A stretch of 64,000 bases of DNA. It comes from Haplodiscus bocki (lineage: Eukaryota). Every line of letters begins with the position of its first letter. Positions within the stretch are counted from its first letter, which is position 1. The notes beneath the pieces are model-generated. The model was not told the DNA's origin. It did no database searches and saw nothing but the letters and a program-made list of their open reading frames with translations. This document shows positions 12,220 through 61,270 of this stretch, one piece after another. The DNA is taken from contig OZ296650.1 of assembly GCA_965655095.1 (NCBI GenBank), forward strand, positions 108,748,001-108,812,000, given 5' to 3'. A program made the position numbers and the translations under genes.

Positions 12220-15200
12220 TGCAAGGGTAGCGGTGGTTCCCTCTGTCCATAAAAAAACCCAAAGATACCTTAAGGTTACAACGGAAGTATATGCAATATC
12301 ACGTCGTTCAAAAATCACCCAATAGCAACCACCTTCTCATTTGCGACTCACAAGCCAGCACCCGAGACACAGGTGTATTGAACGTGCGTCCGTGTGCGAG
12401 ACCATCTTTTCATTCACTGTTGGGAACGACTTCGACAGTGAAGTATCCTTCACCCGCTCAGCTCATCAAAATGCAGAAGATTTACGTGATCTAGCCAAAA
12501 TTCTTGTCGAACGAGCCAAAAACGCATTCGTGCTCGGAATTCCCGAATGACATCACAGTCTAGAACGCAGAAGCAAGGTGAACTCTAGGCAGCAAAAACT
12601 GACGGGAAGCATTTTGGAGTTCATCCAAGCTAGACACATCAAGCTGAGCAAATAACGTAGATCTCGACTCGGTGGGACTCATGAACTTGTACATGCTTGT
12701 CTCCGAAAAATATAAAATTTAACAAATAGGAGGTCTAACAAGACAATCTGGGCACTGCTGAAGTTCTTGAGGGTCAAGGTGACATTCCAGGTCAGTTTTC
12801 CTTTCATTTTCTCCGCAGGTACTTTAGTGATCCACCGAAAATGAAAAAAAAACGGTTTAACCGAAGAATCCTATCGCCAGAACGAGTGAACAGAAACAAC
12901 TCGAATAATAGTTACCAAAAGTCATGGCGGTTAAATCCACTTGCACTTCTCGTTAATAAGTTTTGCACCTGACTAGCAAATGTAATCGATTCGAAGAAAG
13001 TCATTTACGATCTTAGTTGAAGTGTAAGATAATTTTTCCTTCATCTACTGACTGCAAAAACGAAACACGAAAAAATGATCCGAACGACTGAACAGCCTAA
13101 AGTTGACAAAACTCGGCAAGAAACTTTCACGCTTTGAACGAGCCTGGGAAACGTCCTCCGAACAAATGGAGAAGCTGAAACGAAAATGTCAAACAAGAAG
13201 ATGACATCGTCAAACAACAAAGCCTCATTCGCTGAACAAGCAAAACAAAACACGGAACCGCAACGGGAAGACGAATATTCGTTGGTGAAAAACCGGTTGC
13301 GACCTCGGCATTCGAATTAAGGGAATGGCGTGGCGGTAGCAAAAGAACAAAGCGGCGTCGCAAAACTGACCAAACATAGACAAGAGATTAATAGTATCCT
13401 TGGACATCTTGGCATCTTAGAAACCAAGCTCACTAAACTTATCAAATTGAGCAACACAATCCCGCACAAGGATCTCGTAAAATCAGAAATTGATCCGGAC
13501 AGTAAAATAAAGATCTCATCGTCAAAACAGCATTCAAATTGAAAAGATACAAGAAAAATTATCCTGAGTTCTATAAACAAAGTAACATCTTTAATTTGGA
13601 AACTACCACTGAAGCAAATTGAATTGAACTGTTAGCTGAGTCTCATTTCCCGGGATATCTACTTCTGAAGGACCAACTCGGCGGCGATGGACTCAAAGAT
13701 GAAGATGAACGGCATATCTTGGACACATCCAGCGAACTCAGCTTTAGCCAACACCTTCACGACCCCAACTCCAAACAACTAATCGTGCTATTGAGCAATA
13801 ATGAGGACCCGACACAAAAATGCGTGGCAGACCACACATTCACAGAAAACAAAAAATAATGATCACAACGTATATTCGACACTGTAACATATCCAACGTG
13901 AAGATTGGAGTCCGGATACTCAACAGGAAAAATATGGACTCATAAACCTGACTGAACGCTTTAGCAGACGCTATCAACGAAAAACCAATTGATCCGTATT
14001 GCAAACGCAGCGCTAACGCACTGATGGAACCTTATTAGGCTGACATCACACAGTTCACCATACATCAGTAAACGCATTTCAGACATGCATCAAAATCAAG
14101 CCACAAGGAAGAGAAAAATACCGCAACGTAGCTCAATGTCTGTCCATCAGGCGGCTCTAGAACTAAATCAAGATTGAGACGGAAAACGATTTAGGTAGCA
14201 ACGAGACAAAAGCTTCTAGCTCACGCTAGTTCTTTCGGATGCACCAGTAAAATGCCTTTATCAAGAAGAAACCCACACTCCCTCATTCAGGTATTTCACA
14301 CAGAAAGAACTACCGACACCGATTAAGATTGCGCACGGCTTTTCAACGAATTCTTTACCAGTGTCTTGAACTCCAAGGTTTACGATGGAACCATCAGCTT
14401 CCAAAATAGTTCACTGAACCGGATTAGAATTAGCGAACGAAAATTAGACACTTCTGAACAGTTGGAGCACAGACCAATCGACTGGCCTAGATGACTTTAG
14501 AGGTATTTTCTTACAACAGGCCTTGACCTCTTTTAACGAATCCTTAACTTTACTCTTCCAAAATATTCCTAAAACACCGGGACTCGAAAGAAAACTAACA
14601 CTAGATCGAGACACGATCTCAAAGCTCTTCATAACATCACAATCAGAAGAAACTGTACAGTTGTTAGAAAGATCCAATATCACACAGGATCTGTAACACC
14701 AGTTCTCACATACAGCTTCAAACATACAAGAACATGGTGCCTTGCAGAAGTTAAAGTGTAAAGCAAGCACTAGACTATAAAGATACTGTTGAAATGTCAA
14801 CTTCTCCCGGGTTCACTATACATGGAAATCCACGAATTACAATACCTACTAGACTAACGAAACAGAAAGAATGACATTGAACCCAGCACTCTTCCAACCT
14901 AGCAGTAATCAAAGCAGCAGAAAGGAACTGATCACACCCTCATACTAGACTTACAAAGTTTAATGAAAACTACTCCCACGCGCGAGCTTCCTCTACAACT
15001 TGTTTATACAATTGGTATGAAACGGAACATAAATTGACAAAACATCCCTACGTAAGGTCTACTGTCATTATTTCGCGCAAAAAAACAATGGAAAAGTTCT
15101 ATGCACCTGGAAGACATTGTGTCTTTGCAACAACAAATGAACCCATTATGGAAAACTAGTCCATTTCTCCGCAGGTATTTTAAGGTTCTACAGAAACGGA

Positions 15201-15292: not shown

Positions 15293-16527
15293 TTGTTGGA
15301 AGAGAACTTTTCACGGCGCGAAGGCTTCCGTTTTTATTCAACTCGCAACTAACAAAAAAAATCTCTTCCACCTTTTTATCTGATTCCATTCAAATTATTT
15401 TTGTTCCATGAAACTTTGTTGAAAGTATTTCAAATTAAACACCTGACAGGGATTCAAACAAAGCGAGTGAATTTAAAAATAATCATTTTCAACTGTCTGT
15501 AAAATAGCGTATTTCAAATTAAGGGATTTGGAGACCTAAGTGACAAGATATAGGACTTAAATTTGTTAGTGTCTTCGAAATTGCCAAAGATTTCAACTTT
15601 CTCCCATGAGAATCGGGGAATTGTCGCATTTCCACCAAAATTATATGGAATAGCATGTGGAAAATTAAGCCTTGCCATAACTTTTCGCAGAAATGCCCGT
15701 AACGCAGATGAGATACGGAACTTCAAAGAAAAATCTACTCAATTGAAAATTCAGCTGCAAAATTTTAAAAATGCTTCTGAATCTTCCAGTGCTAGCTTTA
15801 CTCCACTTCCCTAAAAAACTGCAAAAGTACGCTATTACTATAGTGCCAAGAAAAAACATACCTGCTTTTGAACAATTGAAATTTTTGCTCGACATTGAAA
15901 GTGTCAAAGGGCTGCATGTTGAGGTATCTTTTATGCAATTTATGACCATTAGCAGTTCAAAATAAAATTATAGCTCACAAGCTGCATTATTTTGGCACAT
16001 CCATAATTCTTCAGCACATACTTTGCATCAATGCAGGATTTCCAATCCCTCTTTGCGCCATCCTCGACAAGAACTTCCCTTGTGCACAGCTGTTCTGATT
16101 GATTGCGTTCTCGTTCCTCAACAAACGCTTCATCATTTACATTCGAGCTCATCTCCGATACCCAAATACTTCTATTGCATCAGAATACTTCTAGTGCAAG
16201 TATTTTAATAGAACAGATGCACTACTCTACATATTCACTAAAACAGAGCCTATTTCTCTGTTTCCAGAGTTGATTGGAACAGGTGATTTAACATTAGGAG
16301 CAGAAAACTGATCACAAATTGATAAGAAACAGTTTAACAAACTCGCAGAAATAATCGTCCGTTAGTATTGGGAAAGACGCCGGACAAAAAACCGTACCCC
16401 TAAACATTACTAAACATCATTATTAAATAGTTAAATAATGATCGGCTGGGGCAGCTGTGGTGGCCCCCTTTGATTGATCTTCACAAATTCAGAGGAAGCT
16501 GACTAGAAATTGGATTTTTCTCAACAG

Positions 16528-17124
16528 ATGATAAAGATCATTGCTGCCAGCTCCCTGCAACACTCCCTAAAGTCACTCCCACAAGCTGAACAAGATAATC
16601 TTTCCGAAATTATCTATTCTTTACCTGGTTTAAATCTTGATCCGACCAACAATCGTTTCGTTTACCCTTATCTGACTTCTGCCCCGTTGAGAAATGTTCA
16701 GCTAATCCTCTGGCACGATTTACTTAACAACACCCTTACTTCTCATCCGAAGAAGAAAAATATCCCTCAGACTGTTCCCCAACTTATCGAAACCCTCAAA
16801 AGTCTCCAAAACCTTTTTCGTGTGGTAACTTGCCAACGTGACGGTGCCCCCTACATCTTCGAGGAGCTTCTTAAAGCTTTGCCCTGTTACGTTATTGATG
16901 TCACGAAGCATATCATAAGCGCAACAGAACAACTCAACGATACTATTATCTCTCAATATAAACGTCTTCATCTATCTGCTGATCTTGAGCTTCGATCTTT
17001 GTCTGTAATCCTTCATTACCAAACAAACATCAAACGAATTTTCAAAACTAGAGGAACGAAACCCAGGAACACAATTGACAGACGCGAAGCGAAGAAGAGG
17101 CGAATCCCAAAACACCTTCAGTGA
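16528..17124 (+). CDS. ORF0 of LINE B: intact 198-aa SGNH-hydrolase-like protein with a basic C-terminal tail
   Basis: Uninterrupted ORF; first ATG at 16528, in-frame TAG upstream at 16504. Motifs KIIAASSL / SLPGL / LILWHDLLNN / YKRLHL fall in the order and spacing of SGNH blocks I, II, III and V. Homologous relics lie upstream of LINEs C and D. Confidence 0.7.
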   Translation: MIKIIAASSLQHSLKSLPQAEQDNLSEIIYSLPGLNLDPTNNRFVYPYLTSAPLRNVQLILWHDLLNNTLTSHPKKKNIPQTVPQLIETLKSLQNLFRVVTCQRDGAPYIFEELLKALPCYVIDVTKHIISATEQLNDTIISQYKRLHLSADLELRSLSVILHYQTNIKRIFKTRGTKPRNTIDRREAKKRRIPKHLQ

Positions 17125-17139
17125 CGAATCTTGTTAAGT

Positions 17140-17265
17140 AGGTGTGCTTGTTGAGTCACTGGCTCTGAGCCCCTCCCAATAGGATTCTCTGTACGTGTAA
17201 GTTTAGCATTTCTGATATACCGTCTTTGAAAGGTGTGCTTATTGAGTCTCTGGCTCTGAGCCCCT
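17140..17265 (+). repeat. Duplicated 35-bp motif in the ORF0-ORF1 spacer
   Basis: aggtgtgctt(g/a)ttgagtc(a/t)ctggctctgagcccct at 17140-17174 and 17231-17265. Confidence 0.9.
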
Positions 17266-17293
17266 TCAAAAGATAAGTGATCCCAGGAATAGG

Positions 17294-18109
17294 ATTGCTT
17301 CTGATAACAACTATTACCCTACCGTTGCTGAACTGCTGAACACATCCAACAGTGACCTAACCAGCTTTCTTTCTAAGGCTAAAAAGGCTACTTTGGAATG
17401 TTTACTACGTGAAACTTTGTCGCAACTGAACGATGCCAAGAAACACAATGAGCAATTGATAACATGCTGGGATGAAAACAAACGCTGCCTCCAACAACTT
17501 CAAAACTCTGTAACTGAAATCGGCAAAACTTCCCCGAAAATTATATCTGAGACATCAGAACCAGCAGTCTGGGCTGACGTAGTGAAGAAGTCCCTAGATG
17601 AAAGAGATTATGACAAAGCGGCATCAGAAACCGTTGTGTTTTACAATATTGCTGACCATTCCGATGACATTCCAATTACTCAACAACTGGAACCCTTTTT
17701 GAAAACGCTAGAAATTCCTTCCTCTGTAGTTAAATGTGCCAAAAGGCTTGGTGAACGCAAAGCTGCTCAAAATAAAAAATCATCTGTGCCTTCTAGACCT
17801 CGTCCCATTGAAGTCTGTTTGAACTCAGTTTTCGATAAGCGTCTCCTCATGAGCAATGTATCCAAGTTAAAAAGTACTGCAGTCTTCGTGAAACCAAAAC
17901 TGTGTTGGAAGGATCGTCTTATTGAGAAAGAGCTTCTTCATGCAAGATTTGAAATGGTTAAGAAAGGTGCCGATCGTTCACTCTTCCGGATAAGAGACCT
18001 CAAACTATTCTACAATGCCTCTCCTGTTGATGTTTCTGACGTTGACAAGTTCATGATGACAATTAACACAATCTCTGATAATTTACATCCTAATTCTGGT
18101 CCGGAATGA
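17294..18109 (+). CDS. ORF1 of LINE B (coiled coil + RRM-like + C-terminal domain)
   Basis: Frame open from 17246 to the TGA at 18107-18109. Motifs TVVFYNI, AKRLGE, RPRPIEV, KLKS..VFV, RIRDLKLF are typical of RRM-type LINE ORF1. No N-terminal ATG; ATT-GCT-TCT at 17294 may be a mutated start (inference). Confidence 0.8.
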   Translation: MASDNNYYPTVAELLNTSNSDLTSFLSKAKKATLECLLRETLSQLNDAKKHNEQLITCWDENKRCLQQLQNSVTEIGKTSPKIISETSEPAVWADVVKKSLDERDYDKAASETVVFYNIADHSDDIPITQQLEPFLKTLEIPSSVVKCAKRLGERKAAQNKKSSVPSRPRPIEVCLNSVFDKRLLMSNVSKLKSTAVFVKPKLCWKDRLIEKELLHARFEMVKKGADRSLFRIRDLKLFYNASPVDVSDVDKFMMTINTISDNLHPNSGPE

Positions 18110-20941
18110 CTAGTTAACCCAAAGATATGTCTTCTAAATGCTCGTGGATTAACAACTATAGCAAAGCGATCACGCCTACTTGACTACCTTATCACCAACC
18201 AAATTGAATTAACATTCATCACTGAGACTTGGTTGGATCACACTTTTGACGACAATGTTGCCTCGCTGTTTGGGCAGTACACTGTAATCGGAAGACGTGA
18301 CCGTTGTAATGGCCCTCACGGCGGGGTCATTGCCTTGAAAAGGGTGTCCTCTAGCATCAATTTCTCAAAAATACCGCTAGATGACTGTTTCGACTTTGCT
18401 TGTGCGTTCGTGCAAAATAGCCGGAATGTCTCACCAATACTACTGCTACTTGTCTAGCTTCCCCCTTCTAGCAGTCGTTACAGTGTATCAGCAAATGAAC
18501 TTTCTGTGTGAATTGATAGCCTCCTCAACTCTCTTATCTCTGAACATTCAAATTCTTTACCCCATTTTTGTGTCTTAGGTGACTTCAATCTTCCGAAATC
18601 ACAGTGGAAGACGTTGAGTAGTAGCGTTGATTATGAACTTGATGTCTTAGATATTCTGAGCAATCACTTTCTCACTCCGATAATTACTAACACCCCAACG
18701 CACATAGCTAACAATGTTCTGGATAACATTCTAGTAAGTGATCCTTCCCTTTTCAATCTATTATCAATCGACTCTGGTGCCAATATCAGTGATCACTATC
18801 CTATAATTTTTGAGTGTATTATTTCAGAACAACTCGTATTGGTATCTAGTCCTCTGCAATACAATTTTAACAACATGCGCTCGTTGAACAACTTTCGAAG
18901 CTACTGGCAACCCTTTGATTATTCCAACCACCCTAGTAGCACCGTAGAAGAATTCTACTTACACCTTCATAATGCAATCGCTCTTACTCTAGTCAAGAAA
19001 CGAACAAAACGTGTAAAGTTACCATATTATTACACTTCACACACTGTCCACTGCTACAATAGACTTGAAACTCTTAAACGACGTTGTATACGAAATCCAA
19101 CTAATAAAAACTTGACCAATCTAAACAGCTCACAGAAAGATTTCGACGATTCTGCAGAGTTGGACAGAATCACTTTACTTCATGGCTCCACCACCCACTT
19201 AATCTCTGAAAGCTTCAAACTTCTGCGCTCTCTTTCCAGCCAAACTCTTCCTCAAATAATGTTCCGTGGAGACAATTATTTCAACTCAGTTGCTGCAATT
19301 GTAAATGGGTTCAATGATTTCTTCGCTGAAAATTTCAACTTGCAACACTTTGATGATGTTGTGCCTTCGACCGACTGCTCACTTGAGCTTGATGGAGTAC
19401 TTGACACCTTCTCTCCCTGTGAAATTGTCAACTTCATAAACAATCTGAAGTCTTCTACGTCCCCAACCAACGGCGGCTTTCCCACACGTCTATTGAAACT
19501 TCACTCAGAGTTATTTGGAAAACTTCTACATCCTGTATTTTCATCGGTTGTCTTGACCAGGATTTTTCCACCAGAGTGGAAAGCGTCTCACATACTTCCG
19601 CTACATAAAGATGGTCCTAAAAATTGCATAGAGAACTATAGACCCATCAGTCTCCTTCCGAAAGTCTCTTTAATTTTTGAACGCATTCTTTTCAATTAAA
19701 TCTATTCAGCCATCAAAGACAAACTACATCCGAAACAATTCGGTTTCCAAGCCAAACGAGGAGCAGTCCTGCAACTTCTCGACTATCTTGAAACTATATA
19801 CAGACAATCTTCAAGCATTCTGTTTGCTGTGTACCTTGATTACGCTAAAGCCTTCGATAAAGTGCCTTATGCTGTCCTATTGAAGAAACTTCACACATTT
19901 GGTATGGATCTGAATTTCATTTCTTTGATGAGATCTTACCTGCTCGACAGAACACAAAAAGTTTCTGCCCAAGGTCAGCTCTCAAATGCCCTTCCTGTAC
20001 TTAGTGGAGTACCACAAGGCTCTGTATTGGGTCCGCTTCTATTTCTACTGTTTATTAATGATCTTCCAGCAATCTTTTTAGATGCTATACCTTGGCTCTT
20101 TGCCGATGATTTAAAACTTTTGTTCAATACAGCTAACTTCCATGACGACTTAAGTAGGTTGCATAACTGGAACCTCTCAAATGGAATGCTAGCCAACACA
20201 GCTAAAACAAAGACTCTCAACTTTAAATCTGTCACTGGCGTTAATCTAAGTGGCATTAACTTGATGAATGTAAATTCGCAAAGAGACCTCGGAGTCGTAG
20301 TGACCTCTAACTTGAAATGGGACAACCATATCGATATCAGGATCAGCAAAGCGCGCAAATCTTTCTTTCTTCTGAAAAATACTATTCCTTGGAGCACGCC
20401 TTCGAAGACAAAGTATAACCTCTATCGCAGCATGGTCCTATCTGTCCTTCTCTATGGCGCCGTCATCTGTTCTCCAAGTATGTCTTCGTTGAAGAAAATG
20501 GAGTCCTTCCAAAAATTTTGCTTTCGGTGGATTTTTGGAAAAAAGCTGAATTATGAAAGAACTTTGAAAACTAACAACCTACTGCCAATTGCTTACCATA
20601 TAGAGCTGGAGTCCCATTCACTTCTACTTAACTTACTTTTAAATAAATACGCCTACAATGTTGATGAAATAGTGACGTATCAGCCACGAAAACCTTATAA
20701 AAGGCTGAGTTCTTTCAACCCCCTTGTCCTTTCTTCGAACATGAAACATTCTGTTCTGAGAAACTCCGTTATGTCTTTCAATTATCTCCATCGTCATTCT
20801 ATAATCAGTGAACCGCATCCATCCTCAATCAGAAGTGTAAAAATTTTTCTGTTGAATAAAACCTTTGATTTCGATAATACTTGTACCTATTATATTTGTT
20901 GCTGCTGTGCTAAATGCTCACATTTGAAAAGTCTGATATGA
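18110..20941 (+). pseudogene. ORF2 of LINE B: APE endonuclease + reverse transcriptase, three in-frame stops, no frameshift
   Basis: LLNARGL, ITETWL, HGGV, GDFN, LD, SDH (APE); NYRPISLL, YLDYAKAFD, GVPQGSVLGP, FADD (RT). One frame throughout, with stops TAG 18455, TGA 18509 and TAA 19697. Confidence 0.95.
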
Positions 20942-20960
20942 TCTTTCTCTTCTTACATTT

Positions 20961-21007
20961 CTTGGATACCTGAAAAGGAATTAAGTCTTTCTCTCTCTCT
21001 CTCTCTC
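20961..21007 (+). other. LINE 3' stem-loop (cct-GAAA-agg) and (TC)n tail
   Basis: cttggatacctgaaaaggaattaag followed by a TC dinucleotide run; a 3' stem-loop plus simple-repeat tail is typical of CR1/L2-group elements. Confidence 0.7.
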
Positions 21008-23202
21008 ATTACAATCCAACTGCTATTAGATAGACTATTTTTGAGAGTTACTTTCGGGTAAAATGGTACTTTGGGTGCTTTAAAGTCACCCACATAGTTC
21101 AAATGTTATCAAACTGTTCATACATATAAATGAATAAAATGAAAATGTAAAATATCCTCCCGCAAATTGGGGTTGAAAGAATTTATATATATATATATAA
21201 AGTCACCCAAAAAGTAACATAAGCTACCGGCTTTTCATGGAATTTTTGTTCTTTCCCCTCCAAATAGACTTCAAAGCTACAAATGAACGCTCTATTGCTA
21301 TGAACAAGGTCTTCAAGCTTTAATTTCTTTCTAAAAATTTACTTTCTGAGCCTTCGTTGCACAAAGGCCACCTGTTTTTCTTGACTTTTTCAGCAATTTA
21401 ATTTTTGAGCAATTGACAACCAAAAATGTCAGTGACACTGCGCTTTTTGTTAGACGTAAATTGAAATGTCAATTTCAAATGTGTCTATATCATATGTCAA
21501 AAAACTAGGTTGTCGGGTTCGGCAGCTTTTTGGAAGCAAATGCCTGGTTTTGACAAAGAATAAACACACGCAACAGGCCGTTTCGACGGAGTAGTTACCT
21601 GGAAGAAAAATGTATCCGACAGAGACGAAGTTCCACTTCCATTGATTTTGCAACGAACCCGAAGAAGGGCATTGACTAATTCCCCAACGGCAGAAACAGC
21701 TTGATTGATTTTCTTGAGGTTTTCCATAAGGCAAAATTTACAAAGGCAGCTGATCAAAAGCAGCCCGAATTATGAGGATTCAAATGGGGCAGTGAATGGC
21801 AGCAGTTTAACTGGAAGTCCTCGAAAAAACGCAATTATAGAAAAGTTAGAACCTCAAAGAAAAAATCTATTTTTTTTATGTCTAAAAAGTGAAATGAGTA
21901 TCACAAACAGGATAAGACTGCTTTTCGGCAGATTCTCCCTACTGCTATCGCAGACTTTTGAACGACTAGACGGCCGCGATCCGACCAGTAGACTCCGTTA
22001 TTAAAAATACGTTGAACAATGATACCAAGAAAATTTTTCCGTATTGCAAAGAACAAGTCAGGAAAATTCGCAAGGAACGTTTGAACCGCCAGTTTTTTTC
22101 ATATTACGGATCTCAAATAACCACTGGATGGCCACAATCCATCTAGTGAAAAATGGACTGCTAACAAAATTTCGTTCTAAAGCATCAAGTCACAGGATTT
22201 CATGGGTATAGCATGAAAATCTGAAGCTAGGTATTTGCTTCTTCACGAATTCTTTATAATTAGGGCTTTGGAATCGGCAGTGGATGGTTTCGGTCCAACA
22301 AGTGGGTTTTAAGAACAATAACCTCGAAAACACAGGCGCAAAGTGCTTTGACCAAGGCTCGGAAAGATTAGGCGTCATGATTGTAATGCACTTCTGAAAA
22401 CTTTACTGCAAAGACTGTTAAGAACAGTCAAGTATGAGGCTCCAAAACTAAGTAATTAACACTTCAATCACTGTTTTTCAGCGGCTAAAATGTTCAGCAG
22501 CACAAACTTTAGAGCATCTTCAATAACAATATTGGGCAATTATTTTTTTAGAAAAATCGGTATACTTCAACAATAGCTAGAACGCAATAGGGCACCAGAT
22601 TGTATAAGCACAGTAAATGAAGGACAAAATAGGACTTTTCGACGTTTTTGATGAAACTTATTCAGCCAATGGAAAGTTATTGGCTCCCGAAGTTTGCACG
22701 TGAACATTCATGATCTTCCAATTTGTTGAAAATCAGGTTGATCGGAGCACTAGGTAATGAGCAATTGGGCATCAAGATTGAAAAAACCACAAAAGTTACG
22801 ACAATCTTATCTCTGGTAAAGGAAACTAGTTGTTAACAGTGCCACTGTTTCAACCTCAATAAGCTTTACTTCGATGATGTTGCGAGCGCCTAAAAACGCC
22901 AGCAAATTTCGAGTTTCAAACTACAAGACACTAGGAATGTATGATATAGCACCACCATTCATCAGAGGTTTTTCAAATTGCGCATCTGAAACTCAGCATT
23001 GGATGAGGGCAATCCAACTCGATGGGGTTTGAGAAAAACAAATTTGAAAAATGATGCAAGCGAAAAGGATCAAATTGAAAAAGAAGTCTACAGTTTGAAA
23101 CATCTGAAGCAGACGATTTCCGTTTCTTTTTCTCTCTACAAGTCGCGCACATGAATGAAAACTGGACGGTGGATGAGAAAAAAACAAATTCGAACAAAAA
23201 GA

Positions 23203-33990: not shown

Positions 33991-36520
33991 CAAAACTAGG
34001 TTTCCAATTCTATCATGTCCTTTGGACATGTTGAACTTCAGTTGTTTTGCTTCATTCCCAACTTGATGTTGAGGGAATGTCCGTCTATTTAAATCCAGAG
34101 GAGCACAGTTTGGAAGTGAGTATAATCGATTTTCTGCAAAGACACTGCCGTAAAATTGTTGAAGAGTTCGCTTTTTTTTCGATCTGCCTACTAGAGTCAG
34201 TATCCTCTCATCCGACTATGGGGGTATTCTTGGCGTTTTTCGAATTTAATTGAATTAAAACTGGATTTTGTTGAATGCTCTTCTTGTAAAAACGTCACTC
34301 TTGATTTCTGCCAGTTCGATTTCTGATAAACTTTGGATCTTCTCCTGAATTTTTTTGATTTTCAGGAGTCTTTCGAGATATTTATTGGGTTTTCATTTTT
34401 CAGTTTGCATGTTTTTGATCATGTGGTAGGTTGTCAGTCATATCCAAGACTAAAAGTTTGTTCGATGATTTTTAAATCTTGATAAAAATTTGTAGATCTT
34501 TTCCCATAGCCATTCGTAATATTTTAATACTAAAGCATATGAATGGTTCATTTCTTAAAAAGGCATTGAACACAACCCAGTCAGAGCACCTGGGAGCGTG
34601 CTGATAGTTCCGTTTTTTCACAAAGTTGTTATCAGCACATACGACAAGAGTGGAAAAACCAGCTGGTGGTCCAAGTATTTGTTGCTGAGCTTGTCTTGAA
34701 GCAACAGGTCGGTGTGGCAAGATACGACCAGTTTCGGATTTTTGCAGAGTAAGACGTCCACTCAATATGGCTTGTTTTGCGAGGAGAGGTTGAGTTCTAC
34801 AAATTTTTCAGTCACTTGTGCCTCGTAAATGTTTGTAAAGGAGAGAGTTACAGCTTATTTGAGAAAAAGATGTCACCTAGTAATATTCGAAGTTTTTTTT
34901 CCATGGAAAGTTTGTGACATGAAATCTTATTCAGCATGCCTTTGTTTGTAGTCTATTGGTAACCGGTGAAAGCGGGTCCCCTGCTGATGTACCACTGGAT
35001 GAATTTGTGACGGCTGTAAATACTTCCAAGATAAAATGGTTAGGTATTTTGTAGCCATTACCAATTTTTAGGGCATTGAGGATGCCGCTACGTTCAGTTT
35101 TTTATCTAAGTTGCTTCCGGGCCGTTCCTGTAGAAGTGTTAGTATTCAAGGAGAAGTAAAGCTGAAGTTACATCCTCGGTGAGCCAAATTTCACGAAGAC
35201 AGATATTGTCATATATTAATTTTAGTCACTTTTTTCGGGAGTTCCGTCCAGTTTTTTGCATCACTTGGTTCAATGGATACCAAATTATCATCCTTTTAGT
35301 ACTTCCAGCATTAGATTTCTGAGTCGAACGGTCTTTGGGTCGAAGACTTTGCCAATCAGCTCCCTTCTTGACGTCAGACAGTCATTTTGTTCTTGCGTCT
35401 TCCGTCGATAGTGCCGGGCCGATTTGAAATTGAAGCTCAGGAGAGTCTCTCAGCTTGGTTGTCAATTTAAGAAGTATGTTTTTAGCGATTCCATTTTCGG
35501 TGTTGAGCAGCAGTTTTCTAGCTCATTTGTCCGGATTGCATTTTCCCAGCCGAATGGCTTGAGTCAGTTTTGTGTCTTGGATTTCCAAACAAGCAAGTGT
35601 CTTGTCGTTGGTTGCCTTTTCTTCCTACGGTTGTGCTATTTCAGTCAAGTCCTTGCTTTCAAGAACTCTCCGGATGGGGATGACAAAACAAAAAGATCCG
35701 GCCCTTTCACCGTTCTGTTGCAAGTGGTTCACATGTCTTTCCTTAAGTTTATTCAGGTCGTGATTTTCCTTCGATGGGTTTGTTGGAACAAACTAAGAAA
35801 GAAAAGTTGGGAAACTTTTGAAGCACTTTTAGACGGAACGCCCTGAAGACCTGGACAACTAAATCCAATTCTACAGCAAGAAAAATCTACTAATAGTACT
35901 CATTTCTCGTTAGATTTTTTCAACTGTTGGTTTCTTCGCCTTGGATTGCTTTTGTCTTGGCTTTTGAGACAGCATCTCTTTTCTATTCTTTGACAAAAGG
36001 GAGGACGGTTGAAGTCCTTATTGCAAAGAGTGCCACTCGAGGAAAGTGGGTTGTTGGAAATTTTGGAATTTTTGTAGAAGTTTTCGATTATTCTCTTTTC
36101 TGCGGGCATTAAGGTTGGTCGTGATTTCCACAACTGAATTTTGTAGCGTTTGGAGATTAGACAGGTTGTTATCAGCTCTTTAATGATGACAGGACAATGC
36201 TCCAATGAATTTGGCAGAGTTCTCATTTCGTCGAGCAGCTGTTCCGACCTCAATTTTTATCTGGGATCAATTGGATGAAAAGCTTGATGAAAAAGGCTTT
36301 TGGTGTAAGCGGCCACCAAGGTTACGTCCGGGATTTCATTTTATCTGACACTTTTTAGTTGTCTGAAAATATTTTAGGTTGTCGAAAGTTAAGATGAGTT
36401 TCGAAAATGATACAATCCTGAAGTTTCTGATACCATTTTCAAATTTCTACGAAAATGATAGGAAAAGTCAGGAAACTTTAGTTTGGCATTGACTTCCAAA
36501 AAAATTCTGAAAGCAGAAAA
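33990..36520 (-). mobile_element. LINE C: decayed 5' half of a three-ORF element (ORF0, ORF1, endonuclease/linker)
   Basis: ORF1 relic IRRVLES...AIRLGK...ARKLLL...KLRD...RRELIGK..DPKTVRLRNL (35300-35700) is homologous to ORF1 of B; EN motif DNICLREIWL; linker SKGHDRIGNL near 34000-34030, where it abuts LINE E. Confidence 0.75.
35900..36450 (-). pseudogene. ORF0 relic of LINE C
   Basis: Allowing one frameshift it reads EQLLDEMRTLPKFIGALSC...VVEITTNL...LLQKFQNFQQPTFLEWHSL, aligning by eye to B ORF0 PQLIETLKSLQNLFRVVTC...VIDVTKHI...IISQYKRLHLSADLELRSL; basic tail follows. Confidence 0.55.
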
Positions 36521-51900: not shown

Positions 51901-51975
51901 AAAACGCAAACTTTTTATTTATTCTCATATTTATGATATTTCAAGGGTGCCCATCCATTTGAACCAAACCCATCT

Positions 51976-52570
51976 TTGGTATGCCTCATTGGAGCCAGCT
52001 CCCTAAAAACTACTCGGAAATCTCAGCAATTCAAGCGACGAACGACTCTACACAAAGTAGCCATATCTATTCCCGGACTCTTCCTGAACCCCAGAGCGAT
52101 GAAGATTTTGAACATTTTAGAAAATTTGTCGAGGGCATCCACCTCACACTTAGGAGGGACATACTTCTTTGGCACGAGCTAATCAACATCACTCAAACTC
52201 CCCAATTCAGTAAGAACAATCGTCCCTGTTCAGTCCCAGAATTCCAATAGCACCTGAACTATCTGAAGTCATACCTCAGTGTAATTGTGTACTGCCAAAA
52301 GTTTTGTACTTTCCCTATGAGTAAGAAATTGCAAGGCACATAAAATCTTTCGGTCGACATCACACTTCTTTTTGTTCCATTGATAAAAGAAGACCCCAGA
52401 GACGTTGATAGAATTCAGATCAGTCCAATGGGCAAGTTTTTTGGAGGGTTAGTTTGTCCCTAAGATCATCAAACGCAAGGAAAACCTCTTGTCACCTGTT
52501 CGAACGGAGAATATTCGAACGGAGAAATCGAGAAGAGAAAAAACGCAAAAACTGAAACAGTTTTTACTTT
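51976..52570 (+). pseudogene. ORF0 of LINE D (homolog of B ORF0), frameshifted
   Basis: CLIGASSL...ISIPGLFLNP...ILLWHELINITQTP...RPCSVPEF...VIVYCQK matches B KIIAASSL...YSLPGLNLDP...LILWHDLLNNTLTS...IPQTVPQL...VVTCQR; ends in a basic tail. Confidence 0.8.
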
Positions 52571-52620
52571 TTTAGACTTTTCTGCGGTTGCACTTCCACA
52601 GAACATTTTTGGTTCGGAGA

Positions 52621-55600
52621 AGCGCCAATAAAACAACTACATGGTATTGAAAAAAAATTGGAAAAGTAGTGAAAAACATGTTCTAAAAGCATTCCAAGGA
52701 AAGATGTAGTGTTTCTTGCAATAAACGAAACATCATGCATTTCTCGAAAAACTGTACAAAATTGTTTCAAACCGCTAATATTTGAGTCATGAAGATTTCT
52801 CAGGTTTTACTGCGCACATGCAACAGTTGTGTCGAGAGAAACAAACGTGAGATGATTCTGTTTTTTATCATGGAAGACAGATCAAAGTTCGTCGGGGTGA
52901 ACCCGAAAACAATCAACAAAAACTTGGAGACATTTCAACAGGACTTCGAAGTCATCAAACGAGAAGGCGAAAAATTTAAAAACTAAATCCGAAAAAAGTG
53001 TTCAACAATGTGAACAAGAGCCTTGCTCGTGCTGATACGAAAACCTGCGATGGAACAAGAATCCGAGGGCTGCCTGAGGACACGTCACGGTGCCAATGTC
53101 AAAGTTATGATCGCAATTTGCAAAGAGTGAACAATTGTTTCGTTTTTATTCTCTGTTGATGCTGAAATAGTAGATATGAAGAAACTTGGTGAGTTCAACC
53201 CGGCGAATGAACGTTTACAAAAGAATGGGAAGGAGGACTGATCAAGCTATCAGATGCCAAGTTGGAGGAGTAAGGAAAAACCGTGTGTGTTAGCCAAAAA
53301 TGTCATCAAAAGAAAAAAAGTTGGATTATGAACTGTCGAGACGAGATACGGAAATTGTCAACCATGGTACCCATGCCACTAAGATTAAGGTCAAAGACAT
53401 GAAGCTCTACTTGTACCTCAAAATGAAGGGAAACAAAAAAAACTTAACCAAACAGGTCAATTGTTTAGAATTCAAGTCAACTAGAACAGAAATGAAAAGG
53501 CTCTCGCATTTTTATCTTGGTAGAATTAGATCGAAGCATGGTGTTCGCAAATGAAGTCATAAACAAACCCTTCGAATTGATCTGCATCACCGAAGTTTGT
53601 CCTGTTTCTATAGTCTCTGAAAAATACAATCTTTTTACAGAAATATGAAATACGTCGACGTGAGAATTGAGCGCCCAACTACAACCTTGAAAGCTAAATA
53701 TGGACGGCGTTTTTGGGCTAACAAACTCTCTGACCATTGAATGAGTAAATCTCAACTCTGAAACAGAGACGTTTGCAAATGCTATCGGTTGTGAAACAGC
53801 AAAACTGTTAAATGTCAATGAAACAACTACATGGTATCGGAAGAAATTTGGAAAAGTAGTGAAAAACATGTTCTAAAAGCATTCCAAGGAAAGATGTAGT
53901 GTTTCTTGCAATAAACGAAACCACATGCATTTCTCGAAAAACTGTACAAAGTTGCTTCAAACCGCTAAAATTTGAGTCATGAATATTTCTCAGGTTTTAC
54001 TGCGCACATGCAACAGTTGTGTCGAGAGAAACAAACGTGACATGATTCTGTTTTTTATCATGGAAGACAGATCAAAAATCGTCAGAGTGAACCCGAAAAG
54101 AATCAACGAAAACTTGGAGACCTTTCAGCAGGACTTCGAAGTCATCAAAGGAGAAAGTGAAAAATTTAAAAACTAAATCCGAAAAAAGTGTTCAACAATG
54201 TGAACAAGAGCCTTGCTCCTGCTGATACGAAAACCTGCGATGGAAAAAGAATCCGAGGGCTGCCTGAGGACACGTCACGGTGCCAATGTCAAAGTTATGA
54301 TCGCAATCTGCGAAGACTGAACAATTGTTTCGTTTTTCTTCTCTGTTGATGCTGAAATAGTAGATATGAAGAAATTTGGTGAGTTCTACCCGGCCAATGA
54401 GCGTTTACAAAAGAATGGGAAGGAAGACTGATCAAGCTATCAGATGCCAAGTTGGAGGAGTAAGGAAAAACCGTGTGTGTTAGCAAAAAATGTCATCAAA
54501 AGAAACGAAGTTGGATTATGAACTGTCGAGACGAGATACGGAAATTGTCAACCACGGTACCCATGCCACTAAGACTAAGGTCAAAGACATGAAGCTCTAC
54601 TTTTATTTAAAAATGAAGGGAAACAAAAAAAAATTAACCAAACAGGTCAATTGTTTAGAATTCAAGTCAACTAGAACAGAAATGAGAAGACTCTCGCATT
54701 TGTATCTTGGTAGAATTAATTCGAAGCATGGTGTTCGCAAATGAAGTCATAAACAAACCCTTCGAATTGATCTGCATCACCGAAGATTGTCCTGTTTCAA
54801 TAGTCTCTGAAAAATACAATCTTTTTACAGAAATATGAAGGACGTCGACGTGAGAATTGAGCGCCCAACTACAATCTTGAAAGCTAAATATGGTCGGCTT
54901 TTTTGGGCTAACAAACTCTCTGACCACTGAACGAGTAAATCTCAACTCTGAAACAGAGACGTTTGCAAATGCTATCGATTGTGAAACAGCGAAACTGTTA
55001 AATGTCAATGAAACAACTACATGGTATCGGAAAAAAAATTGGAAAAGAAGTGAAAAACATGTTCTAAAAGCATTCCAAGGACAAATGTAGTGTTTCTTGC
55101 AAAAAACGAAACAACATGAATTTCTCGAAAAACTATACATAGTTGTTTCAAGCCGCTAGTATTTGAGTCGTGAAGATTTCTCAGGTTTTACTACGCACAT
55201 CCAACAGTTGTGTCGAGAGAAACAAACGTGATATGATTCTGTTTTTTATCATGGAAGACAGATCAAAGTTCGTCGGAGTGAATCCGAAAACAATCAACGA
55301 AAACTTGGAGACATTTCAGCAGGACTTCGAAGTCATCAAACGAGAAAGTGAAAAATTTAAAAACTAAAATCAAAAAAAGTGTTCAACAATGTGAACAAGA
55401 ACCTTCCTCCTGCTGATACGAAAACCTGCGATGGAATAAGAATCCGAGGGCTGCCTGAGGACACGTCACGGTGCCAATGTCAAAGTTATGATCGCAATCT
55501 GCAAAGAGTGAACAATTGTTTCGTTTTTCTTCTCTGTTGATGCTGAAATAGTAGATATGAAGAAACTTGGTGAGTTCTACCCGGCCAATGAACGTTTGCA

Positions 55601-58600
55601 AAAGAATGGGAAGGAGGACTGATCATGCTATCAGTTGCCAAGTTGGAGGAGTAAGGAATCACCGTGTGTGTTAGCAAAAAATGTCATCAAAAGGAAAAGA
55701 GTTGGATTATGAACTGTCGAGACGAGATACGGAAATTGTCAACCATGGTACCCATGCCACTAAGACTAAGGTTAAATATATGAAGCTCTGCTTGTACTTA
55801 AAAAAGAAGGGAAACAAAAAAACTTAACCAAACAGGTCAATTGTTTAGAATTCAAGTCAACTAGAACAGAAATGAAAAGGCTCTTGCATTTGTATCTCGG
55901 TAGAATTAATTCGAAGCATGGTGTTCGCAAATGAAGTCATAAACAAACCCTTCGAAATGATCTGCATCACCGAAGATTGTCCTGTTTCTATAGTGTCTGA
56001 AAAATACAAACATTTTACAGAATTATGAAATACGTCGACGTGAGAATTGAGCGCCCAACTACAATCTTGAAAGCTAAATATGAACGGCTTTCTTGTGCTA
56101 ACAAACTCTCTGACCATTGAACGAGTAAATATCAACTCTGAATCAGAAACGTTTGCAAATGCTATCGATTGTGAAACAGCAAAACTGTTAAATGTCAATG
56201 AAACAACGACATGGTATCGAAAAATTTTTGAAAAAGTAGTGAAAAACATGTTCTAAAAGCATTCCAAGGAAAGATGTAGTGTTTCTTGCAATAAAATAAA
56301 CAACATGCATTTCTCGAAAAACTGTACAAAATTGTTTCAAACCGCTAATATTTGAGTCTTGAAGATTTCTCAGATTTTACTGCGCACATGCAACAGTTGT
56401 GTCAAGAGAAACAAACGTGACATGATTCTGTTTTTTATCATGGAAGACAGATCAAAAATCGTCAGAGTGAACCCGAAAAGAATCAACGAAAACTTGGAAA
56501 CATTTCAGCAGGACTTCGAAGTCATCAAAAGAGAAAAGGAAAAATTTAAAAACTAAATCCGAAAAAAGTGTTCAACAATGTGAACAAGAGCCTTGCTCCT
56601 GCTGATGCGAAAACCTGCGATGGAATAAGAATCCGAGGGCTGCTTGAGGACACGTCACGGTGCCAATGTCAAAGTTATGATCGCAATCTGCAAAGAGTGA
56701 ACAATTGTTTCGTTTTTTTTCTCTGTTGATGCTGAAATAGTAGATATGAAGAAACTTGGTGAGTTCTATCCGGCCAATGAACGTTTGCAAAAGAATGGGA
56801 AGGAGGACTGATCATGCTATCAGTTGCCAAGTTGGAGGAGTAAGGAATAACCGTGTGTGTTAGCAAAAAATGTCATCAAAAGAAAAAGAGTTGGATTGTG
56901 AACTGTCGAGACGAGATACGGAAATTGTCAACCATGGTACCCATGCCACTAAGACTAAGGTTAAAGATATGAAGCTCTGCTTGTACTTAAAAAAGAAGGG
57001 AAACAAAAAAAAACTTAACCAAACAGGTCAATTGTTTAGAATTCCAATCAACTAGAACAGAAATGAAAAGGCTCTCGCATTTGTATCTTGGTAGAATTAA
57101 TTCGAAGCATGGTGTTCGCAAATTAAGTCCTAAACAAACCCTTCGAAATGATCTGCATCACCGGAAACTGTCCTGTTTTTATAGTCTCTGAAAAATACAG
57201 TCTTTTTACAGAAATATGAAAGACGTCGACGTGAGATTTGAGCGCCCAACTACAATCTTGAAAGCTAAATATGGACGGCTTTTTTGGGCTAACAAACTCT
57301 CTGACCATTGAATGAGTAAATCTCAACTCTGAAACAGAGACGTTTGCAAATGCTATCGATTGTGAAACAGCAAAACTGTTAAATGTCAATGAAACAACTA
57401 CATGGTATCGAAAAAAATTTGGAAAAGTAGTGAAAAACATGTTCTAAAAGCATTCCAAGGAAAGATGTAGTGTTTCTTGCAATAAAGGAAACAACATGCA
57501 TTTCTCGAAAAACTGTACAAAACTGTTTCAAACCGCTAATATTTGAGTCATGAAGATTTCCCAGGTTTTACTGCGCACATGCAAAAGTTGTGTCGAGAGA
57601 AACAAACGTGACATGGTTCTGTTTTTCATCATGGAAGACAGATCAAAAATCGTCAGAGTGAACCCGAAAAGAATCAACGAAAACTTGGAGACCTTTCAGC
57701 AGGACTTCGAAGTCATCAAAGGAGAAAGTGAAAAATTTGAAAACTAAATCCGAAAAAAGTGTTCAACAATGTGAACAAGAGCCTTGCTCCTGCTGATACG
57801 AAAACCTGCGATGGAATAATAATCCGAGGGCTGACTGAGGACACGTCACGGTGCCAATGTCAAAGTTATATCGCAATCTGCAAAGAGTGAACAATTGTTT
57901 CGTTTCTCTTCTCTGTTGATGCTGAAATAGTAGATATGAAGAAACTTGGTGAGTTCTACCCGGCCAATGAACGTTTACAAAAGAATGGGCAAGAGGACTG
58001 ATCATGCTATCAGTTGCCAAGTTGGAGGAGTAAGGAAAAACCATGTGTGTTAGCAAAAAATGTCATCAAAAGAAAAAAAGTTGGATTATGAACTGTCGAG
58101 ACGAGATACGGAAATTGTCAACCATGGTACCCATGCCACTAAGATTAAGGTCAAAGACATGAAGCTCTACTTGTACTTAAAAAAGAAGGGAAAGAAAAAA
58201 AACTTAACCAAACAGGTCAATTGTTTGGAATTCAAGTCAACTAGAATAAAAATGAAAAGGCTTTCGCATTTGTATCTTGGTAAAATTAATTCGAAACATG
58301 GTGTTCGCAAATTAAGTCATAAACAAACCCTTCGAATTGATCTGCATCACCGAAGATTGTCCTGTTTCTATAGTCTCTGAAAAATACAATCTTTTTACAG
58401 AAATATGAAATACGTCGACGTGAGAATTGAGCGCCCAACTACAATCTTGAAAGCTAAATATGGACGGCTTTTTTGGGCTAACAAACTCTCTGACCATTGA
58501 ACGAGTAAATCTCAACTCTGAAACAGAGACGTTTGCAAATGCTATCGATTGTGAAACAGCAAAACTGTTAAATGTCAGTGAAACAACTACATGGTATCGA

Positions 58601-59760
58601 AAAAAATTTGGAAAAGTAGTGAAAAACATGTTCTAAAAGCATTCCAAGGAAAGATGTAGTGTTTCTTGCAATAAACTAAACAACATGCATTTCTCGAAAA
58701 ACTGTACAAAGTTGCTTCAAACCGCTAAAATTTGAGTCATGAATATTTCTCAGGTTTTACTGCGCACATGCAACAGTTGTGTCGAGAGAAACAAACGTGA
58801 CATGATTCTGTTTTTTATCATGGAAGACAGATCAAAAATCGTCAGAGTGAACCCGAAAAGAATCAACGAAAACTTGGAGACCTTTCAGCAGGACTTCGAA
58901 GTCATCAAAGGAGAAAGTGAAAAATTTAAAAACTAAATCCGAAAAAGTGTTCAACAATGTGAACAAGAGCCTTGCTCCTGCTGATACGAAAACGTGCGAT
59001 GGAATAAGAATCCGAGGGCTGCCTGAGGACACGTCACGGTGCCAATGTCAAAGTTATGATCGCAATCTGCAAAGAGTGAACAATTGTTTCGTTTTTCTTC
59101 TCTCTTGATGCTGAAATAGTAGATATGAAGAAACTTGGTGAGTTCTACCCGGCCAATGAACGTTTACAAAAGAATGGGAAGGAGGACTGATCATGCTATC
59201 ATTTGCCAAGTTGGAGGAGTAAGGAAAAACCGTGTGTGTTTGCAAAAAATGTCATCAAAAGAAAAAAAATTTGGATGATGAACTGTCGAGACGAGATACG
59301 GAAATTGTCAACCATGGTACCCATGCCACTAAGATTAAGGTCAAAGACATGAAGCTCTACTTGTACTTAAAAAAGAAGGGAAAGAAAAAAAACTTAACCA
59401 AACAGGTCAATTGTTTGGAATTCAAGTCAACAAGAATAAAAATGAAAAGGCTCTCGCATTTGTATCTTGGTAAAATTAATTCGAAACATGGTGTTCGCAA
59501 ATGAAGTCACAAACAAACCCTTCGAAATAATCTGCATCACCGAAGATTGTCCTGTTTCTATAGTCTCTGAAAAATACAATCCTTTTACAGAAATATGAAA
59601 TACGTCGACGTGAGAATTGAGCGCCCAACTACAATCTTGAAAGCTAAATATGGACGGTTTTTTTGGGCTAACAAACTCTCTGACCATTGAACGAGTAAAT
59701 CTCAACTCTGAAACAGAGACGTTTGCAATTGCTATCGATTGTGAAACAGCAAAACTGTTA
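52621..59760 (+). repeat. Tandem array of six ~1190-bp units derived from LINE D ORF1 plus the start of the endonuclease
   Basis: Unit starts at 52621, 53811, 55001, 56191, 57382 and 58571; copies differ by scattered substitutions and homopolymer indels. Confidence 0.97.
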
Positions 59761-61270
59761 ATCTGCAGTATCCATAACTCCTTGTTGGTACTCCCTGCAG
59801 ACTGCCATGTCACGAATTGAAAGTTCTATTATCTGAAGTCACATCGAAAAGAAAAAAGACTACAATGATAGTCAACAGCAGTACCGCGTTATAATAATTC
59901 CGCCAAAGTAAACTGGAGAACAATGACTTCAACACACAAAGAGGAACTTATCATGGCCGTGCCAGTAAATTACAACTTTGAACAGATTTCGGGTATCCAA
60001 TTCACTGTCTTGCTGGCTAACAATACTGAAACTGCTTATTCGTTCAGCTGGAGGAACGAATCAGCAGTCGTACGAGAACTATCACGCCAATCACACACTT
60101 CGCTCTTTTGCTCAGACCAATTGTCACGAGATGCAGGTATGGATCTCCATGTAAAAGTATTATTTCGATGCCGTGGAATTAACCTAGAGGAGGGGTTAAT
60201 TCTAACGGAATAATTGAAAGTACAATTGAGCAGACTTTCCAGCCACCTAGTCACAGTAAATGTGACAAACTCGTGAGACAAAGGTTCGACCTGATTAGGA
60301 CGAAAACGAAAAAAACTACTCCCGGTCTTCCCAAACATAGATTTATGCTACCACCGTGTGTTTACCTAAAAGAAACCGAAGTTGTTGCACAAGGAAACTA
60401 CTATTCAGGAAGTCGTCGACAAGGAATCGTCAATCCAACAAAAACTAAAGAATAAAACACCATAGAAATAAATTTAGGAATGTCGTGCACTTGCCCACTG
60501 AAACTCCAGGAATCTGTTTTGTCTGCGCGAAAGTTTGCGGACTTACAGAGACCCGTAAAATAAAAAACAGCCAGTCTTTATCCTGGGAAAAATACCTTGG
60601 ATGGAGCAGCAGCAAAAAGTGATTGGAAACAGCTGAAACTTTGTACCTTTTATTTGTCCAAACCTTTCGAAAGGAATAAGCATCTTCACAATGGGAATAC
60701 AAGGCGTGAAGTTGGAACAAAATTATACATGATGAACTGCAGCTTTAAAATGCTGCTCCAATTACAGACGATAAAAACTGTCGAAATATTGTACTGAAAA
60801 GTCTTTCTGCAACGTTGCCCATCTGGTTACTACTTGCAATCAGGACACTGTTTGAGGAAGCGTCTCAGCAAATTTATGATTAACCTTCAGAGTAACTCCA
60901 GTTTCCAAAAAAAACACAAGGAAGCTAGACTGTTTCCGACCAGTATGTCTTCCTTGCACTTTTTCGCAAGTGTTGGAAAAGTTGGTCTTCGATTTCATCT
61001 AAAAAAAGCGGAAGCATATATTACATCAGAGCCACTTCGAAACTGGAGAGGATTCTTCAGCCTCAAAGCAGTTATTAATTTTCCCAGACAAAATCTATGG
61101 GTTCTCTCTTCGAGGATTCCGTCACAAACTGTTAACATTCGTTCACCTGGCTTTTGAAGACGGTGTGTCAAAAAAGGTTAAAAAGAATACTTCTTCAAGC
61201 ACTCTTCAACATGGGAGTTAGCGGAAAAATTTAACAAGACTTTGAAAGCTTTCTCTCGAGTTACACTCAA

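Follow-up and report, generated by a model that had tools for sequence, protein, structure and literature searches.

Does a small open reading frame (ORF) lying just ahead of ORF1 in a long interspersed nuclear element (LINE) belong to that element, and what kind of protein would it encode? The question is raised by a stretch of 64,000 nucleotides from Haplodiscus bocki (assembly GCA_965655095.1, contig OZ296650.1, forward-strand positions 108,748,001 to 108,812,000), which we call the window and whose numbering we use except where another locus is named. There, a LINE designated B carries an ORF of 198 amino acids, here ORF0, followed by ORF1 and by an ORF2 with APE endonuclease and reverse transcriptase domains (APE-RT). 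We consider it likely that ORF0 is the first cistron of a family of APE-type LINEs, specifying an SGNH-fold accessory protein that is modular across retroelements. Of the activities that LINEs encode, that of SGNH esterases is the least understood, and in the studied cases the esterase takes the place of an RNA-binding ORF1 protein (ORF1p). The presence of both genes side by side, and the recurrence of ORF0 as the 5'-most gene in BEL/Pao and Gypsy elements, point to a function in the retroelement life cycle that is distinct and can be transferred.

The repeat unit of LINE B and its relatives

LINE B is a single repeat unit that extends on the + strand from 16429 to about 21007, and is thus larger than the 16528-20941 delimited in a first-pass annotation of the window. 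Aligned with a copy in the fetched locus L013, it forms one block over 16429-21007 at 93.7% identity, from the 5' untranslated region (UTR) through the 3' UTR and including ORF0. Its features are as follows.

16429..16527, + strand: 5' UTR of LINE B; L013 homology begins at 16429, where contig depth also steps
16448-16468, + strand: GC hairpin motif GGGGCAGCTGTGGTGGCCCC in the 5' UTR, conserved among LINE-linked copies
16528..17124, + strand: ORF0, 198 amino acids, intact and stand-alone; predicted SGNH/GDSL fold at residues 1-170, basic tail at residues 171-198
17146..17170, + strand: predicted stem-loop 1 in the spacer, 22 nucleotides past the ORF0 stop, with a 4-bp outer and a 5-bp inner helix (motif scan, alignment, pair counts, folds)
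17237..17261, + strand: predicted stem-loop 2, within which the ORF1 frame opens (same motif)
17246..18109, + strand: ORF1-like open frame, 287 codons from stop to stop (translation)
18110..20941, + strand: ORF2, APE endonuclease and reverse transcriptase (RVT_1, E 6.7e-16; aligned to the APE-RT of locus L004)
20942..21007, + strand: 3' UTR of LINE B, with a (TC)n run at 20990-21007; L013 homology stops at 21007

Contig depth gives a second view of the unit. It was taken from four sequencing runs that are offered as RNA and behave as genomic DNA (the unique flank is evenly covered and there are no joints). The unique flank is covered about 18x; at 16429-16452, upstream of ORF0, depth rises to 360-1500x, and over the same positions the unique-flank contigs stop and loose ends begin. 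ORF0 is covered about as deeply as ORF1, and depth climbs toward the 3' end, a gradient as expected of 5'-truncated LINE copies. Because the block shared with L013 and the depth step both begin upstream of ORF0, we conclude that ORF0 is part of the repeat unit and not a neighbour. The first-pass annotation, which had judged a chance neighbour unlikely and had read an intact 198-residue frame in B, was right on both counts.

The first base of B (16429) is the A of an initiator (Inr)-like TCAGTT that is conserved at the 5' end in five LINE subfamilies. All LINE-linked ORF0 copies share the 5' terminus TCAGTT(A)AA..., followed by the hairpin motif GGGGCAGC(T/C)GTGGTGGCCCC. This motif lies 19-200 nucleotides before the ORF0 ATG in each LINE-linked copy and is absent elsewhere in the 245 kb scanned. 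Since insect LINEs have Inr-type internal promoters, the 5' end of B resembles, by analogy, that of a full-length copy transcribed from an internal promoter. A short upstream ORF of 11-14 codons also occurs in four of six LINE 5' UTRs (B, at 16438-16473, and L013, L001 and L002); it starts about 10 nucleotides from the 5' end of the LINE, crosses the conserved GC hairpin and stops before ORF0.

B has the attributes of an APE-type LINE: elements of its kind have RVT_1 and Exo_endo_phos matches on the same strand, many copies are 5' truncated, and there are no long terminal repeats (LTRs). The APE-RT assignment of its ORF2 holds at the level of domains, but the frame is interrupted by in-frame stops at 18455-18457 and 19697-19699. 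Family contigs from the four runs have a different letter within the codon at 18455-18457, and this stop looks private to copy B. ORF1 of B, described earlier as a complete frame of RRM type, is not complete. The frame has no in-frame ATG in roughly its first 200 codons and lacks the PHD-like motif of its relatives, and a Pfam search with it gave no match. Its nearest clusters by Atlas language-model features are eukaryotic and ORF1p-like (Baculo_FP_2nd, Transposase_22). The close relative in L013 is likewise without the PHD-like part of ORF1.

The order ORF0, ORF1, APE-RT is found in six LINE copies from five subfamilies, namely B and five copies in the fetched loci L001, L002, L004 and L013, the last of which holds two. 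In these relatives all three genes lie on the same strand, with a spacer of 90-270 nucleotides between ORF0 and ORF1. Their ORF0 proteins are 60% (L001), 48% (L002), 49% (L004) and 87% (L013) identical to that of B; the second L013 copy is a different element. In four subfamilies (L001, L002, L004 and the second L013 element) ORF1 has its own ATG and begins with a PHD-like Cys4-His-Cys3 motif. Pfam does not recognise this motif in ORF1 of L001 and L004, and the label comes from the Cys/His pattern and from a related ORF in locus L005 that matches Pfam PHD at E 1.3e-4. Together, these copies support the layout proposed earlier, a tricistronic LINE lineage, here with a separate ORF0 of predicted SGNH fold beside a PHD/ORF1p-type ORF1. 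The boundary between the last two genes varies: ORF1 and ORF2 share one frame with a single stop between them in B (18107-18109) and L004 (8583-8585), form one uninterrupted frame of 731 amino acids in L002 (7681-9873), and overlap in L001.

Predicted fold and conserved residues of ORF0

A word-indexed search with ORF0 returned 40 homologs at 45-90% identity, almost all of 190-205 amino acids. A profile search of 1.84 billion representatives extended the family to 669 clusters at a threshold of E<=1e-3, of which 365 pass E<=1e-10; nearly all are stand-alone proteins of 190-215 amino acids. Because 149 of the best 150 representatives are under 300 amino acids, ORF0 stands alone and is not fused to ORF1; a fusion of the two, which the first-pass annotation had named as grounds for refuting its reading, is not what we find. 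Across distant subfamily pairs synonymous divergence (dS) is saturated and nonsynonymous divergence (dN) is 0.30-0.47. Among close pairs dN/dS is 0.5-0.85, as is usual where selection on an active lineage combines with neutral decay after insertion.

ORF0 is predicted to adopt the three-layer alpha/beta/alpha fold of SGNH/GDSL hydrolases. The AlphaFold2 model, built on a 70-sequence alignment (predicted local distance difference test, pLDDT, 95; predicted template-modelling score, pTM, 0.86), replaced a first model from 27 close sequences that had a pLDDT of 79 and weak Foldseek matches. In a structure scan of 48,161 PDB chains, independent of Foldseek, the best 50 are all SGNH/GDSL proteins (Z 7.3-10.5), with 137-167 aligned residues spanning model residues 1-170. 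They include PAF-AH Ib, OatA, carbohydrate esterases and the OSK domain of Oskar (5a4a, Z 8.5). Among realigned Foldseek candidates of the earlier model, 43 SGNH entries came ahead of the first Rossmann fold. Foldseek ranked PAF-AH Ib first (probability 0.97-0.99, E about 1e-3), and the best matches in a Swiss-Prot structure search were PAF-AH and GDSL esterases. In an ESM-Atlas shape search, four of the best five rows belong to GDSL-lipase Pfam families and the fifth to Acyl_transf_3, with template-modelling (TM) scores by query of 0.50-0.57; an ESM-Atlas feature search with ORF0 returned no usable neighbour (best score 0.44). The zebrafish ZfL2-1 esterase 4c1b is not among the PDB matches listed, and this protein was crystallised as split half-domains, which hampers structural matching (PMC3905857). 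The fold check that the first-pass annotation had proposed for its SGNH-like ORF0 thus came out in favour of that assignment.

The residues expected of an SGNH protein are kept in part. We counted them in 70 diverse members at 21-60% identity, assigning block residues from their order and from secondary structure, without superposed coordinates; the signature positions occur in order. In block I, G-A-S8-S-L, Ser8 is found in 67 of 70 members and Ala replaces the Asp of GDS. Ser8 sits after strand 2-6 at the start of helix 8-15 in the model, a placement that fits the SGNH fold. Gly34 of block II (P-G34-L-S) is present in 61 of 70. Block III reads W-H-D-x-I-N-N68-S instead of GxND, with Asn68 in 65 of 70, and in block V (L-H148-P/Q) His148 is found in 69 of 70. 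The Asp of the block V DxxH motif is absent: position 145 is K, R, S, Q or A and never a conserved Asp, and the sole conserved acid near His148 is E154 (66 of 70). Of ten members sampled, nine have 9-15 Lys/Arg among their last 35 residues. These counts agree with the earlier description of B as keeping Ser and His, missing the block V Asp and having a basic tail. In the model, strand 1 starts at residue 2, and there is neither an N-terminal helix nor a coiled coil.

ORF0 beyond LINE B

The ORF0 family extends beyond LINEs: inside the LTR pair, it also supplies the first ORF of a BEL/Pao family and of a Ty3/Gypsy family. In the BEL/Pao element of L010 (LTRs at 5619-6137 and 14130-14648), ORF0 lies at 7001-7648 between the 5' LTR and gag, with ORFs carrying DUF1759, Pao_retrotransp and DUF5641 downstream. 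L007, an independent copy that comes from a different sample and has flanks of its own, is collinear with L010 from LTR through pol; a further locus, L009, has a Pao fragment downstream of ORF0. The Ty3/Gypsy element of L012 is small (LTRs at 6832-6964 and 11665-11797). Its ORF0, at 7001-7588, directly follows the 5' LTR and precedes a gag with zf-CCHC and protease, RT-RNaseH and integrase. L003 is a second Gypsy copy at about 90% identity to L012. Relative to ORF0 of B, the BEL/Pao proteins (P0068 and P0219) are about 30% identical and the Gypsy proteins (P0034 and P0031) 47% and 45%. The claim that ORF0 belongs to a LINE lineage thus stands for the six LINE copies, but not as an exclusive association. 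Upstream of the complete Gypsy-like element in L012, the LTR-plus-ORF0 segment itself occurs in tandem (750-7780), in at least four full or partial units of about 1.66 kb at 98-99% identity.

A tree of 73 ORF0 rows places five LINE-linked and two Gypsy-linked ORF0s in one clade (SH-aLRT 99), outside which the BEL-linked ORF0s fall. Genomic context is assigned for 12 of the 73 rows, and the tree is compatible with a Gypsy branch nested among the LINE-linked ORF0s as well as with one that is sister to them.

Directly 3' of the ORF0 stop lies a putative stem-loop of about 26 nucleotides (GCUU-NNN-GAGUC-NNN-GGCUC-N-GAGC), with a second copy immediately ahead of the start of ORF1 in B, L002 and L004. 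Of 13 + strand matches to the motif in the 245 kb, 12 fall 14-120 nucleotides past an ORF0 stop, in LINE and Gypsy copies. In ten instances of the 4+5-bp two-helix hairpin, 98.9% of cells pair, compared with at most 51% for slid partners; these are few instances, and the sequences that gave the structure are the ones on which it was tested. Compensatory changes occur at two pairs (G-C to A-U; U-A to C-G to U-G), and single-sequence folds recover the hairpin. We take these patterns as suggestive only of a structure conserved with ORF0. The motif scan found no stem-loop after the decayed ORF0 copies of LINEs C and D, described below. In six LINE and Gypsy copies, splice-donor-like AG|GTRNGY strings are also present 5-25 nucleotides past the ORF0 stop, where they overlap the 5' flank of the stem-loop (window 17128-17140; L001 7585-7595; L004 7575-7590; L012 7590-7600; L013 1100-1115).

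A different arrangement occurs in L005 (1-9074) and L006. There, downstream of an ORF0 homolog (P0049, with 33% identity to ORF0 of B), come small ORFs without annotation over 1.4 kb and next the PHD-finger ORF, with no APE or RT within 7 kb. The 5' block is duplicated whole, at a spacing of about 4.9-5.3 kb. These loci may represent another element type or a non-autonomous derivative.

Three other elements of the window (A, C and D) had also been thought to carry an ORF in the position of ORF0. The features that we recognise in C and D are these.

35913..36179, - strand: remnant of an ORF0 homolog, C-terminal half, in LINE C (profile E 5e-7 at 36179-36021)
51976..52572, + strand: decayed, frameshifted ORF0 homolog of LINE D (tblastn E 1e-6; ORF0 profile)
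52626..59761, + strand: six tandem copies of a 1190-bp unit, about 95% identical, with PHD/ORF1-like pieces (self-BLAST)

The homolog in C, reported as the weaker of the two, is upheld by the profile match and has APE/RT pieces downstream at 34848-31099 on the same - strand. In D, the ORF0 homolog is likewise supported by profile matches at 51937-52340 (E 9e-9, 3e-6 and 7e-3), but the element is not a plain LINE: the ORF0 remnant is followed by the tandem ORF1-derived array and then by an ORF2 piece at 60198-60623 on the same strand. For the SGNH-like ORF claimed in A (12231-12547), searches with the ORF0 profile and against Pfam gave no match. Only short GDS-like and GxND-like strings speak for it, and we do not count it as support.

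Two further repeats of the window are recorded for completeness. At 23098-29415 a 2071-bp unit is repeated about three times in tandem, at 99.4-99.6% identity, and each copy has on the - strand an ORF of 228 amino acids with RT similarity (24302-24988, 26373-27059 and 28444-29130). The array is an RT fragment from within a LINE that has been amplified into a tandem repeat of long period. Like the 1190-bp array, it was found by self-BLAST and missed by Tandem Repeats Finder (period limit 500). Beyond the 3' end of B, a 106-bp insert at 21093-21198 ends in (TA)n, has the 11-bp direct repeat AAAGTCACCCA on either side (21082-21092 and 21199-21209) and reaches 4-5 times the contig depth of the LINE. 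It is probably a very high-copy element of short interspersed nuclear element (SINE) or miniature inverted-repeat transposable element (MITE) type.

Competing explanations, proposed role and known systems

Several observations weigh against ORF0 as an SGNH-fold first cistron of a LINE family. Pfam finds no meaningful family in ORF0 of B or in 70 family members, with no GDSL match even at E<=1; a family of hundreds of clusters that lacks a Pfam model is invisible to current annotation of transposable elements. PDB sequence searches with two ORF0 profiles yielded noise only, and Foldseek TM scores reach only 0.4-0.5. The residues G-A-S and I-N-N-S and the missing DxxH Asp could indicate a non-catalytic SGNH fold like that of Oskar OSK. 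Among about 13 genomic contexts of ORF0 examined, L005/L006 and L008 are without a clear downstream retroelement. Judged by its sequence, copy B itself is dead, its ORF1 being without an ATG and its ORF2 having stops. A homolog search with the RT found nearest named proteins at most 31% identical, with no clade in their names; PHD-plus-RRM ORF1 has been reported from the CR1 clade only (PMC4120745), which is a lead to the clade and not a test.

A rival view has ORF0 foreign to the LINE, as a gene of another element or of the host beside which LINEs and LTR elements happen to lie or prefer to insert. Diverged homologs beside different element classes would fit this, as would the contexts in which no retroelement is clear. 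Counter to this, homology between copies runs continuously from about 100 nucleotides before ORF0 to the 3' UTR and the depth step lies upstream of ORF0. The Inr-like terminus precedes ORF0 in five subfamilies, and ORF0 lies within the LTR pair in independent LTR-element copies. Its orientation and spacing never vary. The idea is already contradicted by these data, and we give it almost no credence. It is also improbable, if somewhat less so, that ORF0 and ORF1 form one protein in active master copies through splicing or frameshifting, with the stand-alone ORF0 an artefact of decay or of ORF calling. The donor-like strings past the ORF0 stop in six copies and the lack of an ATG in ORF1 of B could be read in this way. 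Against it stand the lengths of the best representatives and a stop whose position is the same in subfamilies that share 21-60% identity. In addition, several stops in all frames separate ORF0 from ORF1 in B, ORF1 of the relatives has its own ATG and a PHD-like start, and ORF0 stands alone before gag in LTR elements.

An alternative that leaves the layout intact concerns the protein itself. ORF0p may have the SGNH fold without being an enzyme, serving as a structural or RNA-binding component of the ribonucleoprotein (RNP) or as a nuclear-import adaptor, in the manner of the OSK domain of Oskar, which is SGNH-like and binds RNA without a catalytic triad. We think this rather unlikely, though it deserves more attention than the two explanations above. 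Arguing for it are the absent block V Asp, the change of GDS to G-A-S, the strongly conserved basic tail, the structural match to OSK and the lack of a GDSL match in Pfam. Conversely, Ser8, Asn68 and His148 are kept in 93-99% of the 70 members, a degree of conservation not easily accounted for unless the protein has a catalytic or ligand-binding pocket, and true esterases score higher (Z 10-10.5) than OSK.

Under the interpretation that we favour, ORF0 as the first cistron of an APE-type LINE, the element would be organised as an Inr-like 5' end, a 5' hairpin, ORF0, one or two stem-loops, ORF1 (PHD-like in most subfamilies) and an APE-RT ORF2, all presumably spanned by a single transcript. ORF0p would be a small cytoplasmic or nuclear protein of SGNH fold that keeps the Ser, the oxyanion Gly and Asn and the base His, does not keep the Asp, and ends in a basic tail. 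By analogy with the esterase domain of CR1/L2 ORF1p, it could act as a Ser-His esterase or a lipid-binding accessory factor that, for example, anchors the RNP at membranes or acts on a lipid or acyl substrate. The precedent for proposing catalysis and the binding of lipid or RNA is ZfL2-1. The basic tail might bind the element RNA or direct nuclear import. ORF0p would work alongside, and not in place of, an RNA-binding ORF1p, and the stem-loop may help to translate the next ORF or bind ORF0p.

More speculatively, ORF0 and its stem-loop could be a portable cassette that has moved between LINEs and LTR elements, with ORF0p acting together with an RNA-binding ORF1p or with Gag and the stem-loop serving termination-reinitiation or as a site for ORF0p. 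We think it less likely than not. Were it true, it would overturn the idea of a mutual exclusivity of esterase-type and RRM-type ORF1 functions and define a new class of accessory gene across several retroelement orders. In practical terms, a separate ORF0 is a clean genetic handle, one small ORF that can be removed with ORF1 untouched, and a tricistronic layout with what appear to be conserved stem-loops between cistrons offers a natural system in which to study translation of downstream ORFs in LINE RNAs.

How does this arrangement compare with those already described? A full-text literature search, with Repbase and Dfam outside its scope, found no description of the ORF0-ORF1-ORF2 layout. 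Primate L1 ORF0 is an antisense frame confined to primates, with no relation in sequence or fold to the ORF0 described here. The two have in common the name and a place as an additional 5' ORF of a LINE, and nothing more.

A closer parallel is the esterase that forms ORF1p in some CR1, L2 and RTEX LINEs (PMC3905857, PMC4120745, PMC13343379). The type IV ORF1p of zebrafish ZfL2-1 (PDB 4c1a/4c1b) is, like ORF0, an SGNH-fold protein encoded upstream of an APE-RT ORF. It also combines the esterase with a basic, arginine-rich sequence, and assembly of the RNP at membranes has been proposed for it. In type IV elements, however, the esterase is ORF1p itself and follows a coiled coil, whereas ORF0 is an ORF of its own, has no coiled coil and is followed by another ORF1. 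Moreover, type IV esterases are found by Pfam GDSL models (PMC13343379), and ORF0 members are not. Type IV LINEs are without RRM or other RNA-binding ORF1 domains (PMC3905857), unlike the ORF0 LINEs of L001, L002, L004 and L013, which carry a PHD-like ORF1. Schneider et al. (PMC3905857) suggested that an esterase and an RNA-binding ORF1p might be redundant or mutually exclusive in combination.

Stand-alone esterase genes are also known from other retroelements. In bdelloids, a GDSL-esterase ORF3 occurs in Vesta LTR elements and also in Athena Penelope-like elements (Rodriguez & Arkhipova 2017, PMC5408684). As with ORF0, this is a stand-alone SGNH/GDSL accessory ORF common to retroelement classes in one genome group, and it has no signal peptide or transmembrane segment. 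ORF3 lies 3' of pol and has canonical GDSL blocks, whereas ORF0 is the 5'-most gene, before ORF1 or gag, and is highly divergent; ORF0 is common to LINE, BEL/Pao and Gypsy elements, and its LINE and Gypsy copies share the stem-loop after the stop. Ngaro elements, of the DIRS order, are described as having an extra SGNH-hydrolase ORF (PMC9210276, citing Goodwin & Poulter 2004). This is, like ORF0, an extra SGNH-domain ORF of a retrotransposon with no proven function; it differs from ORF0 in lying after the tyrosine recombinase, on the 3' side of the element, and in being recognised by standard SGNH profiles. Set against these systems, ORF0 stands apart as a 5' cistron of its own that lacks a coiled coil, lies beside a PHD/ORF1p-type gene, is beyond the reach of GDSL profiles, is shared with BEL/Pao and Gypsy elements at the same 5' position and is followed by a predicted stem-loop.

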